DNA from: Glycera tridactyla
Lineage: Eukaryota
Assembly: GCA_965644265.1 (NCBI GenBank)
Contig: OZ286462.1
Coordinates: 38,378,001-38,442,000, forward strand
Length of the DNA: 64,000 nucleotides
Direction of reading: 5' to 3'
Below the pieces are notes generated by a model. That model did not search any database. It had not been told where the DNA came from and saw only the letters and a program-made list of their open reading frames with translations. Shown here piece by piece: positions 5,301-47,725 of this stretch; the stretch's first letter is position 1, and each line of letters starts with the position of its first letter. A program made the translations under genes and the position numbers.

Positions 5301-8300
5301 TTTTTTTTTTTTTGATTTATAACTTTATTTTGGATCGTCACATACATTTAAACATTTCATACATGCTCTTCTTCAGTCAGACGATTATGGCACATAAATG
5401 AAAATACAACATTGATAGATGAGATGAAAATGATGATGTAATGAAATACATGATGGAGTAATACAACAATAGTAGATTTGGATGAGATTTTGAAGTGAAA
5501 TGAGATGAGAGGCCGCTGTCATTCTACTTATTCTATCGGTGAGATCACAAATTGTCCCAGTATGAGAATATTTTGATCAAAGATTGGTTTTTGTTAAATG
5601 AGGTATATGTGATACTCATAATGAAAATATACTTCTATGCAACTAGTTGCTGCCAAGACTAATTTCTCGATAACTCTACCATAATCTGAGCTCTTTCATA
5701 AATCTCTTGAAGGCAGGAGTCAGCATTATGTCAAAACCATCTTGCTGCTCTATTTGCTGATTCCAGTTTCGGGCTGCCCTGAATCTAAAATTTCTCTCAC
5801 TTATTTTATGGCGGCAGACATCAGTACACAATAGGGGTTTCTCCCGTGATCTGGTAGCATGCTTGTGAGCGGGATTTCTAAGAGAGCAAAGTGGTTCACA
5901 GGTGAAATTCCCATTCAGAATATCATTCACATGTATGAGCTCGTGCTCACTTCTACGGGACAACAGAGGTTGGAGATGAAGTTCCTTATGTAAACTGTCT
6001 ATACTAGCTCATTTTGATGATCTTGTAATAATTCTCATGGCTGTATTTTGCAGCTTTTGGAGAATGTAAGCATCCCGTTGTGCTAGGCTGTTGAATACAA
6101 CATCCCCATAATCAAATATAGGGAGGATCAGAGTATGATATAGCATCAACGATGTTGGCTCACTTAATATAGGGCGTAATCTACCCAGGACCCTAATCTT
6201 ACTCGAGGTTTTGGTCTTGACATACATTACATGTGGTCTAAAAGTCAGATTGGGATCGAGGATAATACCAAGGTACTTCATCTCCTTAACCTGCTCAAGT
6301 GCATGACCTCTGGTGGTGATATTCAAGTTCTATAATCAGGTGTCTTTGTAGAAAGTCCAGAAATCATGCACTTGGACTTTATTAGGTTCAATGATAATTT
6401 GTTACATGCCATCTGTCTGAATTCCATGAGTACACTCATTTGGTTTTCCAAGATATTTCTGTCATTTCCATATATACTAATAGCCATGTCATCAGCATAT
6501 AATTGACATTTAATTTCGGAGGTCAACGGGCTATGTGTGGATTTGGTAAATATTGGATCCGATGTGGTGTGCCTCAGGAAATCTGGTACATCATTTATAT
6601 ATAGACTAAAGAGTAGTGGTCCTAGGATAGATCCCCGGGGCATGCCACATCCAATAGGACATAGAGCAGAGATTGACTCGCCAATACCTGTCTGGCATGC
6701 ACGACTTGTTAGATAAGTATCCAACCATGATAAAGAGATTTTATCCAGGCCATATAATCCGAGTTTCTTCATCAAGAGCGCATGGTCCACCATGTCAAAA
6801 GCCTTCTTTAGATCCAGGAAGATAGTCCCAGCGACACTCCCGTGCCCGATACCAGCATAAATATTATACAGGTAATCGAGCAGGCAAGTGCCAGTGGAAC
6901 GCCCCCTCCTGTAGACTCATGTGCTCTACATGATCATAGAGTTTTTGGCGGATCAATCTTACTAGGATCTTACTAGATGGGGATAGAAGACTGATTGGAT
7001 GATAATTGTTAGGTAGACTATGATCACCATCTTTGTAGAGTGGGACGATAGTTGCAGATTTCCAGAATTGTGGGAAAATGCCATTTCGTATACTATAATT
7101 AAATATGAGTTTGTACATGGGGATCAGGACATCTTTGCATTCATGAATGATTCTATTAGGTAGACCATCATCCCGTCCAGCTTTTGAGACTACCAGTGCA
7201 CCTATTACTTCAGCTATATCATTTTCATTCACAGATTTCAAACAAAAAGTATTTGATAGATTGGATGGAAAATTGTCTAATGGGTCATCGGGTGCAGCAG
7301 GTATTAAGTTTAAGAGTTCTTGACCCACATTTGAAAAATGATTATTAAAGGAATTGGCCATCTCCATTTCATTTGTGATATCATAGATCTTATTTATCGT
7401 AACTTTGCCCTTTCCATCCTTCCAAAAATTTTGAATACACCCCCATAATTTCTTATTACTATCTTTGTGTAACTGTAGCTGGTCTTCCAAGTAGTTTTTC
7501 TGGAGATTTGTTTTCATCTTTTTACCCTCTTTAAGAAGTCAGGTTTTAGTGGCTAGGTTTGCTTCAGAGGGATTAACTTTGAAATCATGGCTTGCCTTAT
7601 CTCTGTCTCATATTAAATCCAGAAATTCACCTATCACCCAGTCTGGACAACCTTCACAAACTATGTATCTTGTCAATGGTATGCATTCACCTACAATATC
7701 ACTTATTTTGTTAAATATGATGGACACACATGCATCAAAAGTTTCAGTTGTCGCTTCCCAGAGGGGACCCAAGTTTATGTTGTCCTGAAATTTCCTCGAT
7801 ATAGCCTCATAATTTGCCTTTTTGAAATTCCTGAGATGTATATATGATGTTTTCTTAGACTTCTGTGCTTTCTTTCTTGTCGTGAAAATTAATCCATGAT
7901 CTGATGAGTACCCAAATTTGAATCATCTTTGATTTATACTATGGTAGAAGCCAGGAATGACAGAGAAACTCATACATGGCAAATGAAAACAATCAGTGTA
8001 TGTATCTTTTATTTTTTTCTCTTTCCAAAGTGCAATCTCCTACAGCAAGGCCTGCCTTTTGGAACATTCTTTGGTGATGAAGTGGTCATCTCCTAAGAGA
8101 GATGGTTTCATCAGAGGTATATCTCACCTCATTAAAGTTATCTTGCACTTATATGAGAGGGAATGTCTTTTCTCAGATTCTATTCGTTGATGAAAACTCC
8201 ATGGCTTCACTTACTTCTTACACATGGACAATTCCGTGTTCACAATTTCGTCAAATATAATTCTGAATGACTAGTATGGGTCACGCGAGGGTGTAAATTA

Positions 8301-23569: not shown

Positions 23570-26560
23570 TCAGGATCTCACCCAATCGAACAGTGCAAAT
23601 TTAAAAGAATTTAGGTCATCCATTTCTTTCAGATTTTGTGGTAATCTGTTCCAGGTAAAAGGACCTCGTGCGGAGAAAGATTGCATTCCAGCGTTAGTTC
23701 TGCTTCTTGGTACAACAACATTTCCCTGAGCAACACCTCTGGTTCTACGTCCATGTTGAAGATACAATGGAGTTATAATTTCTTGCAAATAAATTGGTGA
23801 TAGGTTTTTCACACATTTGAAGACAAATATACAATCATGAAATAATCTTCTTTCTGCAAGACTCAAGAGGCCCAGCTTTTTATGCATTGAGGCTGTGTTT
23901 GTTAGCCTATCAGCCAGCAAAACAATTCGGCAGGCCGAGTTTTGGATCCTTTGAACTTTCATTAATGAATTTTGATTTGCAATTCCGTATAAAATATCGC
24001 CATAGTCTATCACTGGTAAGATTAATGACTTGTATAATTTCAAGGCAGTTTCTTGTTTCATGTATTTCCGTACTCGCCCCAATGCATATAGCTTGCCTTT
24101 TGATTTGTTACATAATTTTTCAATATGATTGTCAAAACTTAGCAGTTTATCGAGGTATAAACCCAGATATTTCATATGTTCAACCTGTTCCAATTGCGTA
24201 TTGCCTATATGAAGATCAAGCTGGCCTTGGTAAAAAAGCCGCATTCTAGTAAAAAGCATGGTAGTTGTTTTCTGAGCATTTAACGATAAACGATTGACAA
24301 CAAGCCAGTTTTCCATCAATTCCAGGTCTTCTTGCAATTTTAGATTTATATCTTCAGTGGTAGTGCTTTCGTAGTAGATTGCAGTATCATCCGCATACAT
24401 TGCGATTTTGGAATTCAATAGTACCTTCGGCAGGTCATTAAGGTAGATCACAAATAACAGAGGTCCCAAAATGGAACCTTGTGGGACTCCACAGTTTATT
24501 AACATTCTATCTGAGAGTTTGTCTCTGAATGTCGTTCTTTGATGTCGATTGGTCAGATAGCTATTTATCCAGCCTGTGACACTGTCGTCCATGCCATACT
24601 CCGCAAGCTTCTTACAGAGCAGGGCATGGTCGACAGTGTCAAAAGCCTTCTTCAGGTCGAGAAATACAGCACCAACACTAGAACCTCTATCCATTGCACT
24701 TAAAATGTCATTCGTTACAGATATTGCACAGGTAGTAGTGGAATGATTCTTTCTGAACCCACTTTGGGATGGATGGAAGAGATTATGATCAGTCATAAAA
24801 GCATATATCTGGTCATGCACGAATCTTTCTAAAATTTTACCTAAGATGGGTAAGACTGAAATCGGACGATAATTAGAAGGAGAATTTCTGTCACCATCCT
24901 TAAACAAGGGGGTGACTTTTGCTTCCTTCCATTCCTCAGGAAACACACTTGTACCAATAGACAGATTCATGATATAGGCAATTGCATTAGACACAAACTC
25001 ACTGCTATCTCTAAGTAGTTGGGCGTGCAAATTGTCAAGGCCTGTTGCTTTTGAGCAGGAAAGTGTAGATAATGCTTTCAGTACAGAACTGGTTTCTATC
25101 TGGTGCAATTCAAATGACAGATCTAGATTGTCTATTTCAGGGATCAGTCTTCTGTCACCAGTTGGCAGCATATCTGCTAATCTTGGACCTATACTTACAA
25201 AGTGCTGGTTTAGTGCGTTCGCAATGTCAGTATTGTCAGACTTGTCACAAATTATTGTCTTGGGCATATCAGTTGATTTATTATTAGGTAAAATATTCCG
25301 TATAACTCTCCATAAATTCTTGCTGTCAGTTCTAAATCGATCTATTTGATTTTGGACATATTCCTTCTTAAGATTTCGATTCAGCATGTTTGCGTAATTT
25401 CTTGCCCTTTTTGCTCTAATTTCGTCGTCTCTGCTCTTAGTCTGCTTAAAAATTCTATACAAGTAGTCCCGTTGGTCACTTGCAGAGAAGTACTCATGAG
25501 TCAGCCAAGGGGGTAGGTTACCCTTAATCTTGATCTTTTTGTATGGGGCATGTTTGTCACAAATGGGTAAAAACATATCCTTAAAAATAGACCAAGCTTC
25601 ATTTGGATCAGACTGCTCTAGTATGGTATTCCAGTTTGTGTTCCGAAGATCTTCACAGAAACTGGTTTTATCATATTTGTTAAAACTCCGGGCGTGAATG
25701 AATTTAGTCTCGCCCTTGGGTTTGGTCAGCTTCCGGCTGTAAAAAATCAAATCATGGTCACTAATTCCGTGACGAAAATGGCCTGTTTGATTCATCACTT
25801 CGGGTCTATTTGAAAAAATTAGGTCTATACATGTAGAGGTATCTGCACTTATCCTGGTCGGGTTATTTAAGAAAGATTGCTGACCGCTTAGACCTGCCCA
25901 TCTCAGTAGAGATATTGTATCCCTTGCCTTTTTCTGAGTCAGATCAATGTTGAAATCCCCGATAAACTCTACTTCAGCATCTGGTTCATTCAGTGTGAAT
26001 TCTGTAAACTCTCCCATGTTGTCAAGGAAATTTCCCATATTCCCATTGGGTGGTCTATAGATACCTGTTATGAGTATTTTCCTGGTATGTGGCAGTACCA
26101 GCTGTATTCCCAGACTTTCGATATCACTATTGCTTTTGCTTAGTTCTGAAACTCTAGAGAAATTGTATTTTTCCTTAATAAACAGGCATACCCCACCACC
26201 TCTCTTGTCTATTCGATCATTTCTGAGTATGTTATAGTTTGATATTTTCAATTCTGCATCTGTGATATTTCCTGTTAACCAGCTTTCTGTGATAAACATC
26301 AAGTCAATGTCACTGTTGAGTAGTACGTGTCTTAAGTGGTCCAGCTTATTGAAAATACTACAAATGTTTAAATGGGCTATGGTGATTCCCTTCGCTCTAC
26401 TGATCTCTCTAAGATTTGTGACAGTTTTTTCGTTAGGTCCTGGATTCTTTTCGATGTCACCGCATAGATATAGAAGTTTCTGCAAAGTCAAATTGTCTGG
26501 AAAACAGATTTGGAGATACCCAACTAGGGTCATTTTAAACAGAAACGATGTCCTGTGCAT
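23570..26560 (-). CDS. LINE ORF2: 2A-like peptide, APE endonuclease, reverse transcriptase (996 aa from first ATG; frame open from GTG at 26611)
   Basis: APE motifs HLNICS, ITESWL, RNDRIDKRGGGV, YRPP, GDFNID, CIDLIFSN, SDHDLI. RT motifs YRPISVLPILGKILE, QSGFR, FLDLKKAFDTVDH, GVPQGSILGPLLF, YADD, YLGL. C-terminus FSARGPFTWNRLP is typical of CR1/L2-group elements. Confidence 0.97.
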   Translation of the reverse strand: MHRTSFLFKMTLVGYLQICFPDNLTLQKLLYLCGDIEKNPGPNEKTVTNLREISRAKGITIAHLNICSIFNKLDHLRHVLLNSDIDLMFITESWLTGNITDAELKISNYNILRNDRIDKRGGGVCLFIKEKYNFSRVSELSKSNSDIESLGIQLVLPHTRKILITGIYRPPNGNMGNFLDNMGEFTEFTLNEPDAEVEFIGDFNIDLTQKKARDTISLLRWAGLSGQQSFLNNPTRISADTSTCIDLIFSNRPEVMNQTGHFRHGISDHDLIFYSRKLTKPKGETKFIHARSFNKYDKTSFCEDLRNTNWNTILEQSDPNEAWSIFKDMFLPICDKHAPYKKIKIKGNLPPWLTHEYFSASDQRDYLYRIFKQTKSRDDEIRAKRARNYANMLNRNLKKEYVQNQIDRFRTDSKNLWRVIRNILPNNKSTDMPKTIICDKSDNTDIANALNQHFVSIGPRLADMLPTGDRRLIPEIDNLDLSFELHQIETSSVLKALSTLSCSKATGLDNLHAQLLRDSSEFVSNAIAYIMNLSIGTSVFPEEWKEAKVTPLFKDGDRNSPSNYRPISVLPILGKILERFVHDQIYAFMTDHNLFHPSQSGFRKNHSTTTCAISVTNDILSAMDRGSSVGAVFLDLKKAFDTVDHALLCKKLAEYGMDDSVTGWINSYLTNRHQRTTFRDKLSDRMLINCGVPQGSILGPLLFVIYLNDLPKVLLNSKIAMYADDTAIYYESTTTEDINLKLQEDLELMENWLVVNRLSLNAQKTTTMLFTRMRLFYQGQLDLHIGNTQLEQVEHMKYLGLYLDKLLSFDNHIEKLCNKSKGKLYALGRVRKYMKQETALKLYKSLILPVIDYGDILYGIANQNSLMKVQRIQNSACRIVLLADRLTNTASMHKKLGLLSLAERRLFHDCIFVFKCVKNLSPIYLQEIITPLYLQHGRRTRGVAQGNVVVPRSRTNAGMQSFSARGPFTWNRLPQNLKEMDDLNSFKFALFDWVRS
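26435..26500 (-). other. 2A-like (StopGo ribosome-skipping) motif at the ORF2 N-terminus
   Basis: LTLQKLLYLCGDIEKNPG|P matches D(V/I)ExNPGP (DIEKNPGP at 26458-26435) with the usual leucine-rich upstream helix. Confidence 0.85.
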
Positions 26561-27569
26561 TGTGATAGCTGCTATTGGGCGAGGGGTGATATAGAATTCA
26601 CATTCACACACATTTACTCCTAGGATGAGGTCTGGAGAGTTTCCGTGTATAACCAGTAAAATAGTATTAAATGAATACTACTAAAAGTATGGGGGGGGGG
26701 TGGTGGATCAGTAAGTAATTCAATCCCTTTTGGTCCGTATTTAGTCCCCTTTTCTAACCGCCATCCATCAGTACACGTACAGCGTATAGCAATCATGTTC
26801 AGAGAAGTCATCAGATTGATGCGAGCAATAACAAGTTGTTCAGTAATACAGCTACAATTCTTTCTATATGGATGAGGTGCCCATGAGGGTTAAACGCCAT
26901 CCCTGTCTAAAAATTATTGTGATTCAGCTAGTGGATGAGGTGTCCATATGGATTAAACGCCATCCTTTAGGTTGTTGTATGCCTAAGGCAGTATTGAATG
27001 CTGGAAGGCAAAAACATTTCAAATGTGAGCTTCAGACCATCATAGGTTAATCATAGGTCTAGAGATCGATTGTCTTTGCAGTTCAAAAATGCAAGATTTC
27101 TGGTAAAATAGTTCATATGTCCATATGTAAGGTAAGTATTCTGTGTGCTGAACATACTGCAAAAAATAGCAAGAAATAGCAGGAAATAGCCTGATCATCA
27201 GTCCATATATCAGCCCTGACCATGGTATGGGCCCAAAAATTTAGATGATCCGGCCATTTGAGAACGTTAGAGTAACTATACATGCAGTTAAGACAACATG
27301 GTGCTGGGTATCGTTGATGGACCGAGACGAACCGACGAGCAATACCACGTACACCCATTAAAACTGCGGTCTTGCTATTATGCCAAGACATTAATAGAGA
27401 GATAAATCGTCTAGCAAAGCTAATTATTGTACATACTGAGATCGTTTGGTGGTACTAGTCGGTCCGTTGTTTACCGGGCTGGTGGAGTTGCTATGATTCG
27501 TGTACTATAAGGCATTATGAAGACACTAATTCGTTCTGAGGGTGCCAGGCGATTGTTATGACTCTAGAC

Positions 27570-27735
27570 CCGGTCGCCATTTTGTACCACATGCCTTGGC
27601 CTTTGAGGAAGGAGCATGCTGATTGGCTGAACGTCGAGACTCGCAGGGCATCATGGGAGAAATCGACCGATAATTGCTAAAAAATTTCGCTAAGGATCAT
27701 GGGAGCGGTTAGTCATATTACCGCCATTTTACTGT
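27570..27735 (-). promoter_or_regulatory. CpG-rich promoter-like block inside the inter-ORF spacer
   Basis: YY1-type AAAATGGCGG (27730-27721) and CAAAATGGCG (27584-27575), and NF-Y consensus CAGCCAATCAG (27629-27619), all on the element's sense strand. Confidence 0.5.
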
Positions 27736-27865
27736 ATCATAATCGGGATGTACCGAAAAAGTAGTCCATTATTTAAATCCAAATTACTATTAAAGACTAG
27801 CACACACCATTCATACAATAGATGATTATATGCCAAAATAAGGATTGTTCGTTGAAAAAAACGAA

Positions 27866-28813
27866 TTATCCCTGATTCTGGTCAATGTTTTCATCAGCGT
27901 TTGTGATGCGCGGCAGGTCGTCTTCACTCGCGATGGAGGTGGCTTCTTCACCCTCGTTTCTCACAATAAACACAGTGCCATTTGTCGTCCAAGTACGAAA
28001 TATCATCCGTTTTCGCACCCTCAGTCTTGCTGCATAGGCTAGCCTGGCTTGTTCACGTGTGAGATCTTCTTGTATAAATACAAATGGAAGTTTCGGTCTA
28101 AGCACAATCCGTTCGTTGTAGATGGAATCTCGCAGATTTTTGTTGGCCAGTTTCACAAGTAAAGGCCTGCAGTTTTCGGGATTGTTCCTTCCCATTCTCG
28201 ATGTTGAAACGATCTGTGATGGGGCCATTGGTACATCCAGTTCTTCATTGACTAATCGTGTAATGACTCGTATGTCATTTAGCCCTTCAGCGATACCACG
28301 GAAAACCAAATTGTTTTCTTTATTGTCAGTTTGTTCAGGTATCGCCATGCTTTGCGGTGGATCAGCTGATCGCATTTGTTCCGGGGGTTTCAATTCGCGA
28401 ATAATGGCATCTTGATCAGCCACTTTCTCCTCCAGCGCTTGAATACGGCTTTCGTAGTGGGCTACTGTGGATTTGATGAGACCATTAAGCACAGTAGCTA
28501 CATTGTCGTCTTGTAGGGCGATCATCAGGTTCTGTTTGAATTCCTCGTCTTTCGCAAGAAAGTTCCCATTCAACCTTGGTTCAGACTGATTACAAGATTC
28601 CAATGAGGATTCAGCGTCTTTGATTGTACTTTCATCTAATGCGATAGAACCAATGGAAGGTTCCAGAGTTACTTTATTAGGCGTGCTTTGCGATGGCAAG
28701 CCAAATAGATTGAATTCAAGGCTGGTTGTAACAGTGCGCCCACGTTTTTCTCCGGGATCGTCCATTTTGGTGGTTGGTGACAACTCACGCTTTGAAGAAG
28801 TCGGCGTTGTCAT
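27866..28813 (-). CDS. LINE ORF1 (Transposase_22/L1TD1-like: coiled coil, RRM, CTD; 315 aa from ATG, frame open from GTG at 28837)
   Basis: Coiled coil YESRIQALEEKVADQDAIIRELK; RRM start NNLVFRGIAE; RMGR..RPLLVKL; FIQEDLT; TWTTNGTVF; positioned upstream of ORF2. Confidence 0.9.
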   Translation of the reverse strand: MTTPTSSKRELSPTTKMDDPGEKRGRTVTTSLEFNLFGLPSQSTPNKVTLEPSIGSIALDESTIKDAESSLESCNQSEPRLNGNFLAKDEEFKQNLMIALQDDNVATVLNGLIKSTVAHYESRIQALEEKVADQDAIIRELKPPEQMRSADPPQSMAIPEQTDNKENNLVFRGIAEGLNDIRVITRLVNEELDVPMAPSQIVSTSRMGRNNPENCRPLLVKLANKNLRDSIYNERIVLRPKLPFVFIQEDLTREQARLAYAARLRVRKRMIFRTWTTNGTVFIVRNEGEEATSIASEDDLPRITNADENIDQNQG

Positions 28814-30955
28814 GGCGTCGCAGTATTCGTATCCCACTGCGTGTGCAAAGTTCGAGTTTCTTGTAGATTCGCTGGATTATTCTTCTCCAAATCGATATGT
28901 TGGTGGTCTTGGAATATTCGTACTTCAACTCGTCGGTTCGTATCAGTCCATCAATCCCCGTATCCCCCCAAAATGGTAGACTTTGATCAGCTGTTTACAT
29001 GTTTTGTTGTTGTATCGTCGGCGGAGGGATATGATGGATAATTTTGGTTGTAAGAGATGAAGTCACACTCACACAGGTTTTATGGAGTTCTGACTTAAAA
29101 GTTTTATGGAGTTCTAACTTTCATTAACCGAAATATGAGTTCAGTGAGGGTAATTCCAATATATGACTGATAGAATTATAAACTGAGTGGTGGACTGAAA
29201 ATGTGAATTGGTACCATGCACATTATACTCAGTTTCATGATGCACAATACACCCAAAGAACAGAAATTATCTCAAGGCGAATTGAGTTAATACTTCTGTC
29301 AACATATCTGATTCTCAGTTCCCACAGCCTACAGAACNNNNNNNNNNNNNNNNNNNNNNNNNNNNNNNNNNNNNNNNNNNNNNNNNNNNNNNNNNNNNNN
29401 NNNNNNNNNNNNNNNNNNNNNNNNNNNNNNNNNNNNNNNNNNNNNNNNNNNNNNNNNNNNNNNNNNNNNNNNNNCGTCACAGTACATTTTGTTAAGAAAC
29501 ACACATATCACCAGTTGATGAAGAAAGTGGATGATTTTGACAATTATCTGGAGGGCAAAAGTGGACGTCACATGGAAACCTAGATAAGTGAAAGGTGTTT
29601 GAGGTATAGTGATTGTTCGGAAAGGCAGGTCATTCAACCCACCCATATATCCCTTCACATTGGTTTTTTTCAAGTGACAGTGGCAGCTAGATATTTTTCA
29701 GACAGGCATCACTAGCAATGTGACAATAATGTTATGAGGAAATATGTCGAGAAATGAGGCTAATAACATATTCAATTACCTCAGTTCATTGTCAGCATGG
29801 GGATGTGATATGGTTTTTTTCCATTAGCATGTCAAAAAGAATTTAATGCAATTTACAAAGCCATGACAACTTAAGAGATCTCCACATGCAGACAGAACAT
29901 GGGGAATCCCCACTTGTACAAGTATCCATATACCTCCCAGTACTCTTAGCAGGAGAAAGGAGAATACAGTTTACAAAACCTGTGACACCTGCCTTGGAGA
30001 AACTGAGTAACAATGCCGAGTTTTTTGTGGTGGTTTGTACCTTGCTATACCCACCTGTTGCCTGGGGTTAAATCCTCTCTGGAATTCAGGACAGATGCAG
30101 AACCAGACTGAAATCCTTACAATATTAACCCACCTCTATGTTCAAAATATGGTGATGTCAACCAATTCTAAAAGTGACATGACAATTTCACCATATGGCT
30201 ATCACTATACATGATTTGCTTATGAATTACACTTCACACATGGATCCTAGAGACCGGCAGTGATTACCAACGTGATCTGAGATTGTCTACAAATTTGTGG
30301 AGAAGATTAGCTATGTTTTCATTGCATTCATACTTTGAATCTGCCACATTTATTGACAATTGTTTGTGTATAAAATAATAAGGATGTGGCTGCCACCACT
30401 GATGGAGATAATATGTGAAAATGACATATTCTGCAAACTGAAGTATAATATATAAGTGAACTTCCTTGTGATCTGTAGTTGCTGGAGATGTCTTGTTGGG
30501 AATTCTTGCATTTACTTTGTAGATCCTGCTACAGATTTTGTAAGAAGAACTCCAGTGTCTCTATATAGAATAAATTGCCTGAAAACTTCCACTCTTAAGG
30601 GAAGAAATTTTCTCACAAGGTTCCACGGTAAGCCACTACAAACCAAATGAAATGCAACTGCAGTGGATCACAGTCTGCTACCTGAACAAATTCAACCAAC
30701 TTCATAATTATATGCCTTGCCCTTCCTCACTTCCCGTGGTGGTAAATGAGCACAAAAACAGAATCGACTGCATGGGCTAAGAATCTACAATTGTCTACAA
30801 TGGTCAAGTACTCATTCATACCAGGGTGAAATGGAGTGGTGGAACTGGGTTGTTCTACTTGTTTACCTCTGCACTGAGATGTAGCCATGTGTAATGGCTG
30901 GTATTCAATGGTCATTTCTGTCCATTTTCATCCCCTATCTGTGTATAAGTTCTGG

Positions 30956-47245: not shown

Positions 47246-47725
47246 TTATATAGAATGCCCCGAGTGCCGTGTACGATGAGAGCGTACGCGTCAAGTAGCG
47301 GGGCCACGGGGACGCACGAGTGGCCGGAGGCCACGAGTGCGTCTCCAGGCTCCACTACGAGACGCATATGCTCTCATCGTACACGGCACGAGTGTTATTC
47401 TGTATTTATCATTCGATAAATCAATAGAATGATGTATTACCTTCAATTTGGTCTTTAGATTGTGAAAATCGGACCAGGGGTTGTTGAGTTACAGCGATTT
47501 TCTTGAGGCATCTTTCCCAAGGTTTGCCTGACGCTATACAAATCGAACTCGCGAGGCTGCCAGTTGACCTTTGACCGCGATTGTTCTATGGCCAATCAGC
47601 GGTGGCGTGCAAGCGTCGGAATAGTTATACCACGAGGAGTATACTATTCGAGGTTATACGATCCCTTCGTACGTACACGGTGAACGTCGATTATATACAC
47701 GATACCCCCTCAATCGGATGATAAA
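47246..47725 (-). mobile_element. CpG-rich element with a ~160-nt terminal hairpin and 13-bp subterminal inverted repeats (Helentron-like or foldback)
   Basis: Perfect 20-bp stem 47264-47283 / 47370-47389, nested stems to the apex GTGGCC-GGA-GGCCAC (47320-47334). SubTIR TTTATCATTCGAT (47405-47417) versus ATCGGATGATAAA (47713-47725), 12/13 match. Confidence 0.6.

Follow-up and report, generated by a model that had tools for sequence, protein, structure and literature searches.

A 26-nt inverted repeat around the upstream open reading frame of an APE-type LINE in Glycera tridactyla

The LINE and its inverted repeat

The window, a 64-kb stretch of Glycera tridactyla DNA, contains a single copy of an element that, judged from its sequence, belongs to the APE-type LINEs (non-LTR retrotransposons): its ORF2 encodes an APE endonuclease and a reverse transcriptase (RT), and a LINE-type ORF1 lies upstream of it. 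Both frames are intact and share the minus strand. The parts of the element are given below in the direction of transcription.

28814..29011, minus strand: 5' UTR, minimum extent; a family contig ends at 29011
28929..28954, minus strand: inverted repeat, 5' arm; located in the LINE 5' UTR; the sense RNA reads from 28954 to 28929; spanned by X1 contig 28611-29011
27866..28813, minus strand: ORF1, 315 aa from its ATG; the frame opens at GTG 28837; enclosed by the 1.6-kb loop between the arms
26612..27865, minus strand: ORF1-ORF2 spacer, 1254 nt, non-coding, with 39 AUGs; unusually long
27455..27467, minus strand: partial third copy in sense orientation, an 11/13 match to the 3' half of the 5' arm
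27314..27339, minus strand: inverted repeat, 3' arm; in the middle of the ORF1-ORF2 spacer; spanned by X1 contig 27214-27700
23570..26611, minus strand: ORF2, 1013 aa, intact, APE endonuclease and reverse transcriptase; first ATG at 26560

Pfam matches of ORF2 comprise RVT_1 (E 1e-41) and Exo_endo_phos (E 7e-7). ORF1 consists of a coiled coil followed by an RRM-like C-terminal half; it had no match in Pfam above the cut-off and none among PDB sequences. In the scheme followed by PMC4120745, an ORF1 of coiled-coil/RRM type is a type II ORF1p. In combining an ORF2 that carries APE and RT with an upstream same-strand coiled-coil/RRM ORF1, the element resembles, in its domain make-up, CR1/L2-type LINEs of the Jockey superfamily, but it differs from them in having ORF1 and ORF2 separated by a 1.25-kb non-coding spacer and in the 26-nt inverted repeat that brackets ORF1. 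A full-text literature search found no description of such an architecture in LINEs, in agreement with the earlier note on this DNA, which knew of no such description. Within the spacer (26612..27865) a coding remnant was looked for, esterase included, and none was found. No Rfam families or ribozymes were detected in 23.0-29.3 kb except for a weak, sub-threshold miRNA-like match in ORF2, a tRNA search found none, and no convincing target-site duplication or 3' tail was found for the element as a whole. A masked run of N occupies 29338-29474.

The 26-nt inverted repeat is real and far beyond chance. A repeat search recovered 27314-27339 and 28929-28954 as the top-ranked inverted pair in 26.5-34.5 kb, the arms being 26 nt long, 92% complementary (24/26) and 1589 nt apart, and this bears out the original description of two 24/26 reverse-complementary segments about 1.6 kb from each other. 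Allowing up to three mismatches, the arm pattern occurs at two sites only in the 64-kb window and at none in 100 dinucleotide shuffles. The best 26-nt inverted window reached 24 matches vs. 18-22 in 30 shuffles of 26.5-29.3 kb, and analytically, about 1e-5 such pairs are expected in this 2.8-kb region and about 3e-3 in the entire window. Alignment of the arm flanks revealed no similarity beyond the 26 nt; the ends are sharp at both arms, as the abrupt loss of similarity reported earlier had implied. The two differences between the arms fall at positions 28942 and 28945, and one of the two is a CpG to TpG change. The window also holds five other non-chance short inverted pairs, compared with none in shuffles.

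The 5' arm is situated 115 nt upstream of the ORF1 ATG (28813) and at least 57 nt from the 5' end of the element, and it contains a 2-codon uORF (AUG at 28951). The spacer arm begins 526 nt past the ORF1 stop and lies 702 nt ahead of the start of the ORF2 frame; between it and the first ORF2 ATG (26560) there are 753 nt and 23 AUGs. The placement claimed for the repeat, with one arm in the 5' UTR and the other in the ORF1-ORF2 spacer, is correct, but the spacer arm does not lie close to the ORF2 leader. The partial third copy, located 115 nt upstream of the spacer arm, was recognized post hoc, and about 1.4 such matches are expected window-wide.

Family copies and distant relatives

Evidence on other copies derives from three low-depth contig runs of uncertain type, obtained from other samples. 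At about 96-99% identity, the X1 contigs 27214-27700 and 28611-29011 each cross one arm together with its flanks. The depth of the arm-spanning contigs is about 3.3-3.6, similar to that of the remaining 5' half of the element; contig depth, which is a poor measure, is about 18 at the 3' end of the element and declines to about 3.5 at its 5' end. Coverage is interrupted at 27701-27901, a gap that spans the join of ORF1 and spacer, and no strand-changing joints were seen in the contigs from other samples. Because these contigs cross each arm and its flanks, the arms are probably a feature of the family, and the segment is probably not a private insertion. This assignment of the inverted repeat to the family and not to one copy is read from contig coverage and overall identity.

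Searches with the two ORFs recovered remote relatives. With ORF2, 72 LINE-like relatives were obtained, and a word search yielded none above 37% identity. The upstream ORFs of the closest ORF2 relatives are quite different, encoding an esterase, NADAR or an unknown product; esterase-type ORF1s are typical of CR1/L2 groups (PMC3905857). ORF1 has 1396 relatives at E<=1e-3, some of which lie upstream of APE/RT ORFs (e.g., in L009), and it shares homology with the upstream ORF in the sister LINE L001 (E 2e-12). Word searches with ORF1, at full length and with its C-terminal half, gave no match, ORF1 was not found in metagenome contigs, and the arm pattern was found in neither viral nor metagenome contigs. 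Searching the whole library returned only distant ORF1 relatives, the closest two of which are on contigs measuring 567 and 1251 bp, both of which stop short of the spacer. Long spacers recur in the relatives L004, L006 and L009.

Retention of the arms in related elements had been set as a test of the proposal. We compared nine relatives, the closest obtainable (ORF2 <=37% identical, ORF1 <=41%), of which seven could be scored. A comparable inverted repeat bracketing the upstream ORF was above chance in none of the seven scorable LINE loci, where bracket scores ranged from 9 to 12 vs. shuffle maxima of 11-14; the window scores 20. In L008, the closest ORF1 relative (41% aa), the TTTTGGGGGG motif, a 5' UTR neighbour of the arm that lies outside it, is kept along with its spacing to the ATG, but the arm sequence is not. 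The outcome of the test is thus negative at every locus scored, among relatives that, at no more than 37-41% protein identity, are too distant to decide the question.

Pairing of the arms in RNA

Since both copies sit in one transcript, the sense RNA can close a helix, predicted by folding to comprise 24-25 bp around a 1.6-kb (1589-nt) loop that holds ORF1. RNAduplex returned 24 pairs for the arms, with -43.3 kcal/mol in sense and -39.3 in antisense, and in a 1.8-kb fold 24 of the 26 arm pairs were present in the MFE structure with pair probabilities of about 1. Local folds around each arm were no more stable than shuffles. In sense RNA the two differences become U-G and U-C, so that 25 of 26 positions can pair, as had been stated. 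The third copy at 27455-27467 could form a competing local hairpin with 12/13 pairs, one of them G-U.

A long-range duplex had been proposed that would loop out ORF1 and bring the 5' end close to the ORF2 leader. Its first part is supported on thermodynamic grounds, as the predicted duplex is very stable and lies within one transcript; delivery to the ORF2 leader is not supported, given the 23 AUGs in between. Ribosome shunting to ORF2 is likewise at odds with the position of the spacer arm, from which about 750 nt with 23 AUGs would have to be crossed to reach the ORF2 ATG; a shunt followed by scanning is therefore unlikely. In the ribosomal shunt of cauliflower mosaic virus 35S RNA, a uORF ends a few nucleotides before a stable leader stem, and no AUG intervenes between the landing site and the main AUG. 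The LINE is similar in that a stable leader stem could let ribosomes bypass the enclosed sequence, but here the sequence looped out is a functional ORF of 1.6 kb, about 41 nt lie between the end of the nearest upstream uORF (AUG-UAA at 29000) and the stem, and 753 nt with 23 AUGs separate the landing side from the ORF2 ATG. Despite the stable stem, we rejected a shunt of this type on the distance of the uORF end and the AUGs after the landing side. The alternative suggestion of a splicing aid found no support either, since inspection by eye showed no convincing donor or acceptor beside the arms.

Known selected long-range RNA contacts are mostly 6-14 nt long. Among them, the CYC5/CYC3 sequences of Ty1 and the cyclisation sequences of flaviviruses are conserved with covariation and join 5' and 3' regions. 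The LINE arms resemble these in being complementary segments kilobases apart in a replicating RNA, but they measure 26 nt, are found in one family only, and would join the 5' UTR to an internal spacer.

Origin and significance of the repeat

The explanation we favour, and to which we give about an even chance, is that the arms arose by inverted micro-duplication of a single 26-nt piece in a young, intact, multi-copy LINE and are tolerated rather than selected. A single copying accident in the master lineage of the family, e.g., a template switch in reverse transcription or repair synthesis, would have left one copy in the 5' UTR and an inverted copy in the middle of the spacer, and every daughter copy would have inherited both. 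The 24/26 identity, the sharp ends and the lack of flanking similarity are the pattern of a recent short duplication, and the CpG to TpG difference fits ordinary decay of one arm. If formed in vivo, the helix (-43 kcal/mol) would stand in the way of cap-dependent scanning 115 nt before the ORF1 ATG, and would lower or gate ORF1 translation rather than deliver ribosomes to ORF2. Several points speak against an accident. A duplex of 26 bp should invite Dicer or ADAR, and its persistence beside intact ORFs could mean usefulness; the arms are placed neatly in both non-coding segments flanking ORF1; and the third partial copy at 27455-27467 could make a two-state switch.

Selection may instead have shaped a long-range helix that regulates the bicistronic LINE RNA, through gating of ORF1, switching between local and long-range pairing, or tethering in trans, a possibility that we entertain tentatively. 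It would agree with the high stability of the helix, which dominates the 1.8-kb fold, with the location of the arms exactly in the 5' UTR and the spacer, and with the stronger pairing in sense than in antisense (-43.3 vs. -39.3 kcal/mol), where one mismatch becomes a G-U wobble. The 1.25-kb spacer with its 39 AUGs further suggests that ORF2 needs some non-standard route of expression, and long spacers are shared by L004, L006 and L009. On the other hand, the repeat is absent from the seven scorable related loci and the arm is not kept in L008, 26 bp far exceeds known functional long-range contacts, and the spacer arm is remote from the ORF2 ATG (753 nt, 23 AUGs). More specific versions, taken jointly, appear rather unlikely to us: a selected two-state RNA switch in a LINE that expresses ORF2 apart from ORF1, or a variant with tethering in trans. 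In the switch, for which the partial third copy could provide the local competitor, the spacer arm would pair either with 27467-27455 in a local hairpin, leaving ORF1 open to scanning, or with the 5' UTR arm in the long-range helix, closing ORF1. In the trans variant, a separate, spacer-born ORF2 transcript would be tied to the full-length RNA, and ORF2p, which acts in cis, would thereby copy the complete element.

The remaining explanations assign the arms a role in DNA or none at all. Two inverted copies of an orientation-independent protein-binding site, belonging to a 5' UTR promoter and a putative internal spacer promoter, would account for one ORF downstream of each arm, for the promoter-like boxes noted by eye between the ORF1 stop and the spacer arm, and for the two ACCGA motifs, 10 nt apart, in the 26-mer. 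Factor sites, however, are usually 6-12 bp long, the 24/26 identity points to common descent, no known motif matches, and the element holds no further copies or half-sites beyond one weak 13-mer; we regard this explanation as unlikely. Still less probable, in our judgement, is that a 1.64-kb cassette (part of the 5' UTR, ORF1 and 526 nt) was inserted or swapped into an ORF2 element, with the arms as its terminal inverted repeats or its recombination borders. The sharp repeat ends and the quite different upstream ORFs of the closest ORF2 relatives (esterase, NADAR, unknown) would suit such a cassette, as would the exchange of ORF1 modules among CR1/L2-type LINE lineages (PMC4120745). Against it, the cargo is a LINE ORF1 rather than a transposase, the depth of family contigs is even across both borders, and in L008 the ORF1 on the inner side of the arm and the 5' UTR motif on its outer side are both retained, indicating that the two travel together. 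Neither target-site duplications beside the arms nor strand-changing joints were seen, which counts against the cassette and equally against the DNA-level recombination sites proposed earlier; to our knowledge, LINEs encode no recombinase. The flanks, ...GGGTATCG on the left and TCCCCGTA... on the right, contain no direct repeat beside the arms. We also rejected a TIR DNA transposon or MITE, as no target-site duplication flanks the arms and at both borders family contigs continue into the same flanks, and a twin-priming 5' inversion, as ORF1 and ORF2 are intact on the same strand. A repeat private to this copy, or an assembly artefact, would be compatible with the single element copy in the window but not readily with contigs from independent runs that span both arm sites and flanks at 96-99% identity, and we consider it very unlikely.

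At present, the finding amounts to a genuine repeat seen in one family, in our preferred reading a tolerated micro-duplication, and its main value is as a marker for aligning family copies and close sisters. A long-range helix proven to gate ORF1 or to link two transcripts would give non-LTR retrotransposons a control principle new to them, with a bearing on ORF2 translation in LINEs with very long ORF1-ORF2 spacers.

The inverted repeat within its host LINE

Two 26-nt arms are reverse-complementary at 24/26 positions across 1589 intervening nucleotides, confirming the earlier note's observation of an inverted repeat bracketing ORF1. Both lie within a single minus-strand LINE, whose sense RNA comprises, in order, a leader of at least 57 nt, the 5' arm, 115 nt, ORF1, 526 nt, the 3' (spacer) arm, 702 nt and the ORF2 frame.

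Features of the LINE, in sense order
28929-28954: 5' arm, in the 5' UTR
27866-28813, minus strand, counted from the ATG: ORF1, 315 aa, intact; coiled coil and RRM-like C-terminal half
26612-27865, minus strand: ORF1-ORF2 spacer, 1254 nt, 39 AUGs
27314-27339: 3' arm, in the spacer
23570-26611, minus strand: ORF2, 1013 aa, intact; endonuclease and reverse transcriptase domains

The inverted repeat is real and not a product of chance. With up to three mismatches allowed, the 26-mer occurs at only two sites in the 64 kb and at none in 100 dinucleotide shuffles, and local 2.8-kb shuffles reach at most 22/26. When the test was limited to one arm upstream of ORF1 and one between ORF1 and ORF2, the score was 20, and shuffles scored no higher than 14. 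Aligning the arms together with 200 nt of flank, gaps allowed, revealed no similarity outside the 26 nt. Five further short inverted pairs in the window had no equivalent in any shuffle, all of them more closely spaced or part of dispersed repeats. The window's strongest hairpin-like repeat, at 47264-47389, where inverted 42-nt copies enclose a loop of 42 nt, has no relation to the LINE.

ORF1 matched no Pfam family above cut-off. It is homologous (E 2e-12) to the upstream ORF of L001, the nearest ORF2 relative, and a whole-library search yielded 1396 ORF1 relatives, some located upstream of APE/RT ORFs (e.g., in the ORF1-based locus L009). No coding remnant was found in the 1254-nt spacer. 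It contains two AAAATGGCG boxes and one CCAAT box, a direct repeat at 27641/27687 (46-nt spacing), three GGATGGCG modules at 26750-26970, a (GCAAGAAATA)3 array at 27159-27190 and, on the plus strand and thus antisense to the LINE, a consensus-like 5' splice site AAGGTAAGT at 27128-27136 that may be due to chance. The RT part of ORF2 holds a 65-nt imperfect palindrome (24574-24644) with a weak mir-4504 Rfam match far under the gathering score; at this site contigs accumulate and many have loose ends, some of the contigs coming from a second organism. A 5'-truncated ORF2 piece of a second, divergent LINE lies at 5730-7922 on the minus strand (28-40% aa identity to the studied ORF2).

Other copies and related LINEs

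The window contains no second copy of the LINE, and the family was not found in the protein and contig collections searched; other copies are known from low-depth contigs of three runs only. Contigs of one of these, X1 (401-667 nt, ~96-99% identity), tile the 5' half of the LINE except 27701-27901. One contig (27214-27700) spans the site of the spacer arm and another (28611-29011) that of the 5' UTR arm, at depths of 3.3-3.6 like those of neighbouring contigs. Because both arm sites are spanned, a private insertion or assembly artefact is unlikely, and the inverted repeat is probably family-wide.

Nine more distant loci were compared, based on ORF2 (L001-L006, 31-37% identity) or ORF1 (L007-L011, up to 41-44% over fragments); seven were testable, having both an upstream ORF and sufficient sequence. 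The earlier note regarded absence of the arms from related elements as refuting a functional duplex. No bracket around the upstream ORF exceeded shuffle level (0/7), although all of these relatives are too distant for covariation to be judged fairly. Among ORF1 relatives with a 5' UTR, the closest, L008, retains the ORF1 start and, at about the same distance from its ATG (~145 nt), the TTTTGGGGGG motif (window 28963-28972, minus strand; L008:191-203). The sequence around this motif is not alignable, and the L008 stretch opposite the 5' arm is unrelated. Since the motif spacing is kept, the 5' arm does not represent 26 additional nucleotides relative to L008; its sequence is unconserved at such distance. 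Long spacers (0.8-1.4 kb) recur in L001, L004, L006 and L009. The ORF1 position of two LINEs from the same ENA assembly (L004:2910-4889 and L006:2260-4566) is occupied by a NADAR-domain ORF of 659 aa or by an ORF of 768 aa with no known domain, and a spacer of 1.1-1.4 kb then leads to ORF2.

Predicted pairing and possible roles

Pairing of the arms is predicted at -43.3 kcal/mol in the sense and -39.3 kcal/mol in the antisense RNA, and a 1.8-kb sense fold includes 24/26 pairs in its MFE structure with probabilities near 1. Such pairing follows from the complementarity of the arms and is no evidence of a helix in vivo. Local folds around either arm were unremarkable. Part of the 5' arm, its 3' half, recurs imperfectly in sense orientation at 27467-27455 (minus strand, 11/13), 115 nt 5' of the spacer arm; this post hoc match, of which ~1.4 are expected window-wide, could form with the spacer arm a local hairpin competing with the long-range helix.

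The roles suggested in the earlier note fared less well. The duplex was proposed to bring the 5' end close to the ORF2 leader; with 702 nt to the ORF2 frame and 753 nt to the first ORF2 ATG, the spacer arm lies mid-spacer. The stem is stable, but the nearest upstream uORF (AUG-UAA at 29000) stops ~41 nt short of it, and a ribosome landing beyond the stem would meet 23 AUGs on the way to the ORF2 ATG, making shunting and scanning to ORF2 unlikely. As to a splicing aid, inspection by eye revealed no good splice donor or acceptor adjoining the arms. As to DNA-level sites, neither a target-site duplication nor further copies or half-sites are present. Twin priming is excluded because ORF1 and ORF2 share one strand.

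That the arms mark the borders of an ORF1 cassette is barely alive, retained because ORF1 modules are exchanged in CR1/L2 lineages (PMC4120745). Both borders of the bracketed segment run into the same flanks in the X1 copies, and no strand-changing joints were reported among the contigs, which are weak evidence for absence. The main alternative, held with less confidence than our best reading below, is a selected RNA switch. We found no description of an inverted-repeat bracket in LINEs in the literature searched. Our best reading, held with about even confidence, is that the inverted repeat is a young inverted micro-duplication tolerated by the LINE lineage; the helix, if formed, would act mainly as an obstacle to scanning into ORF1.
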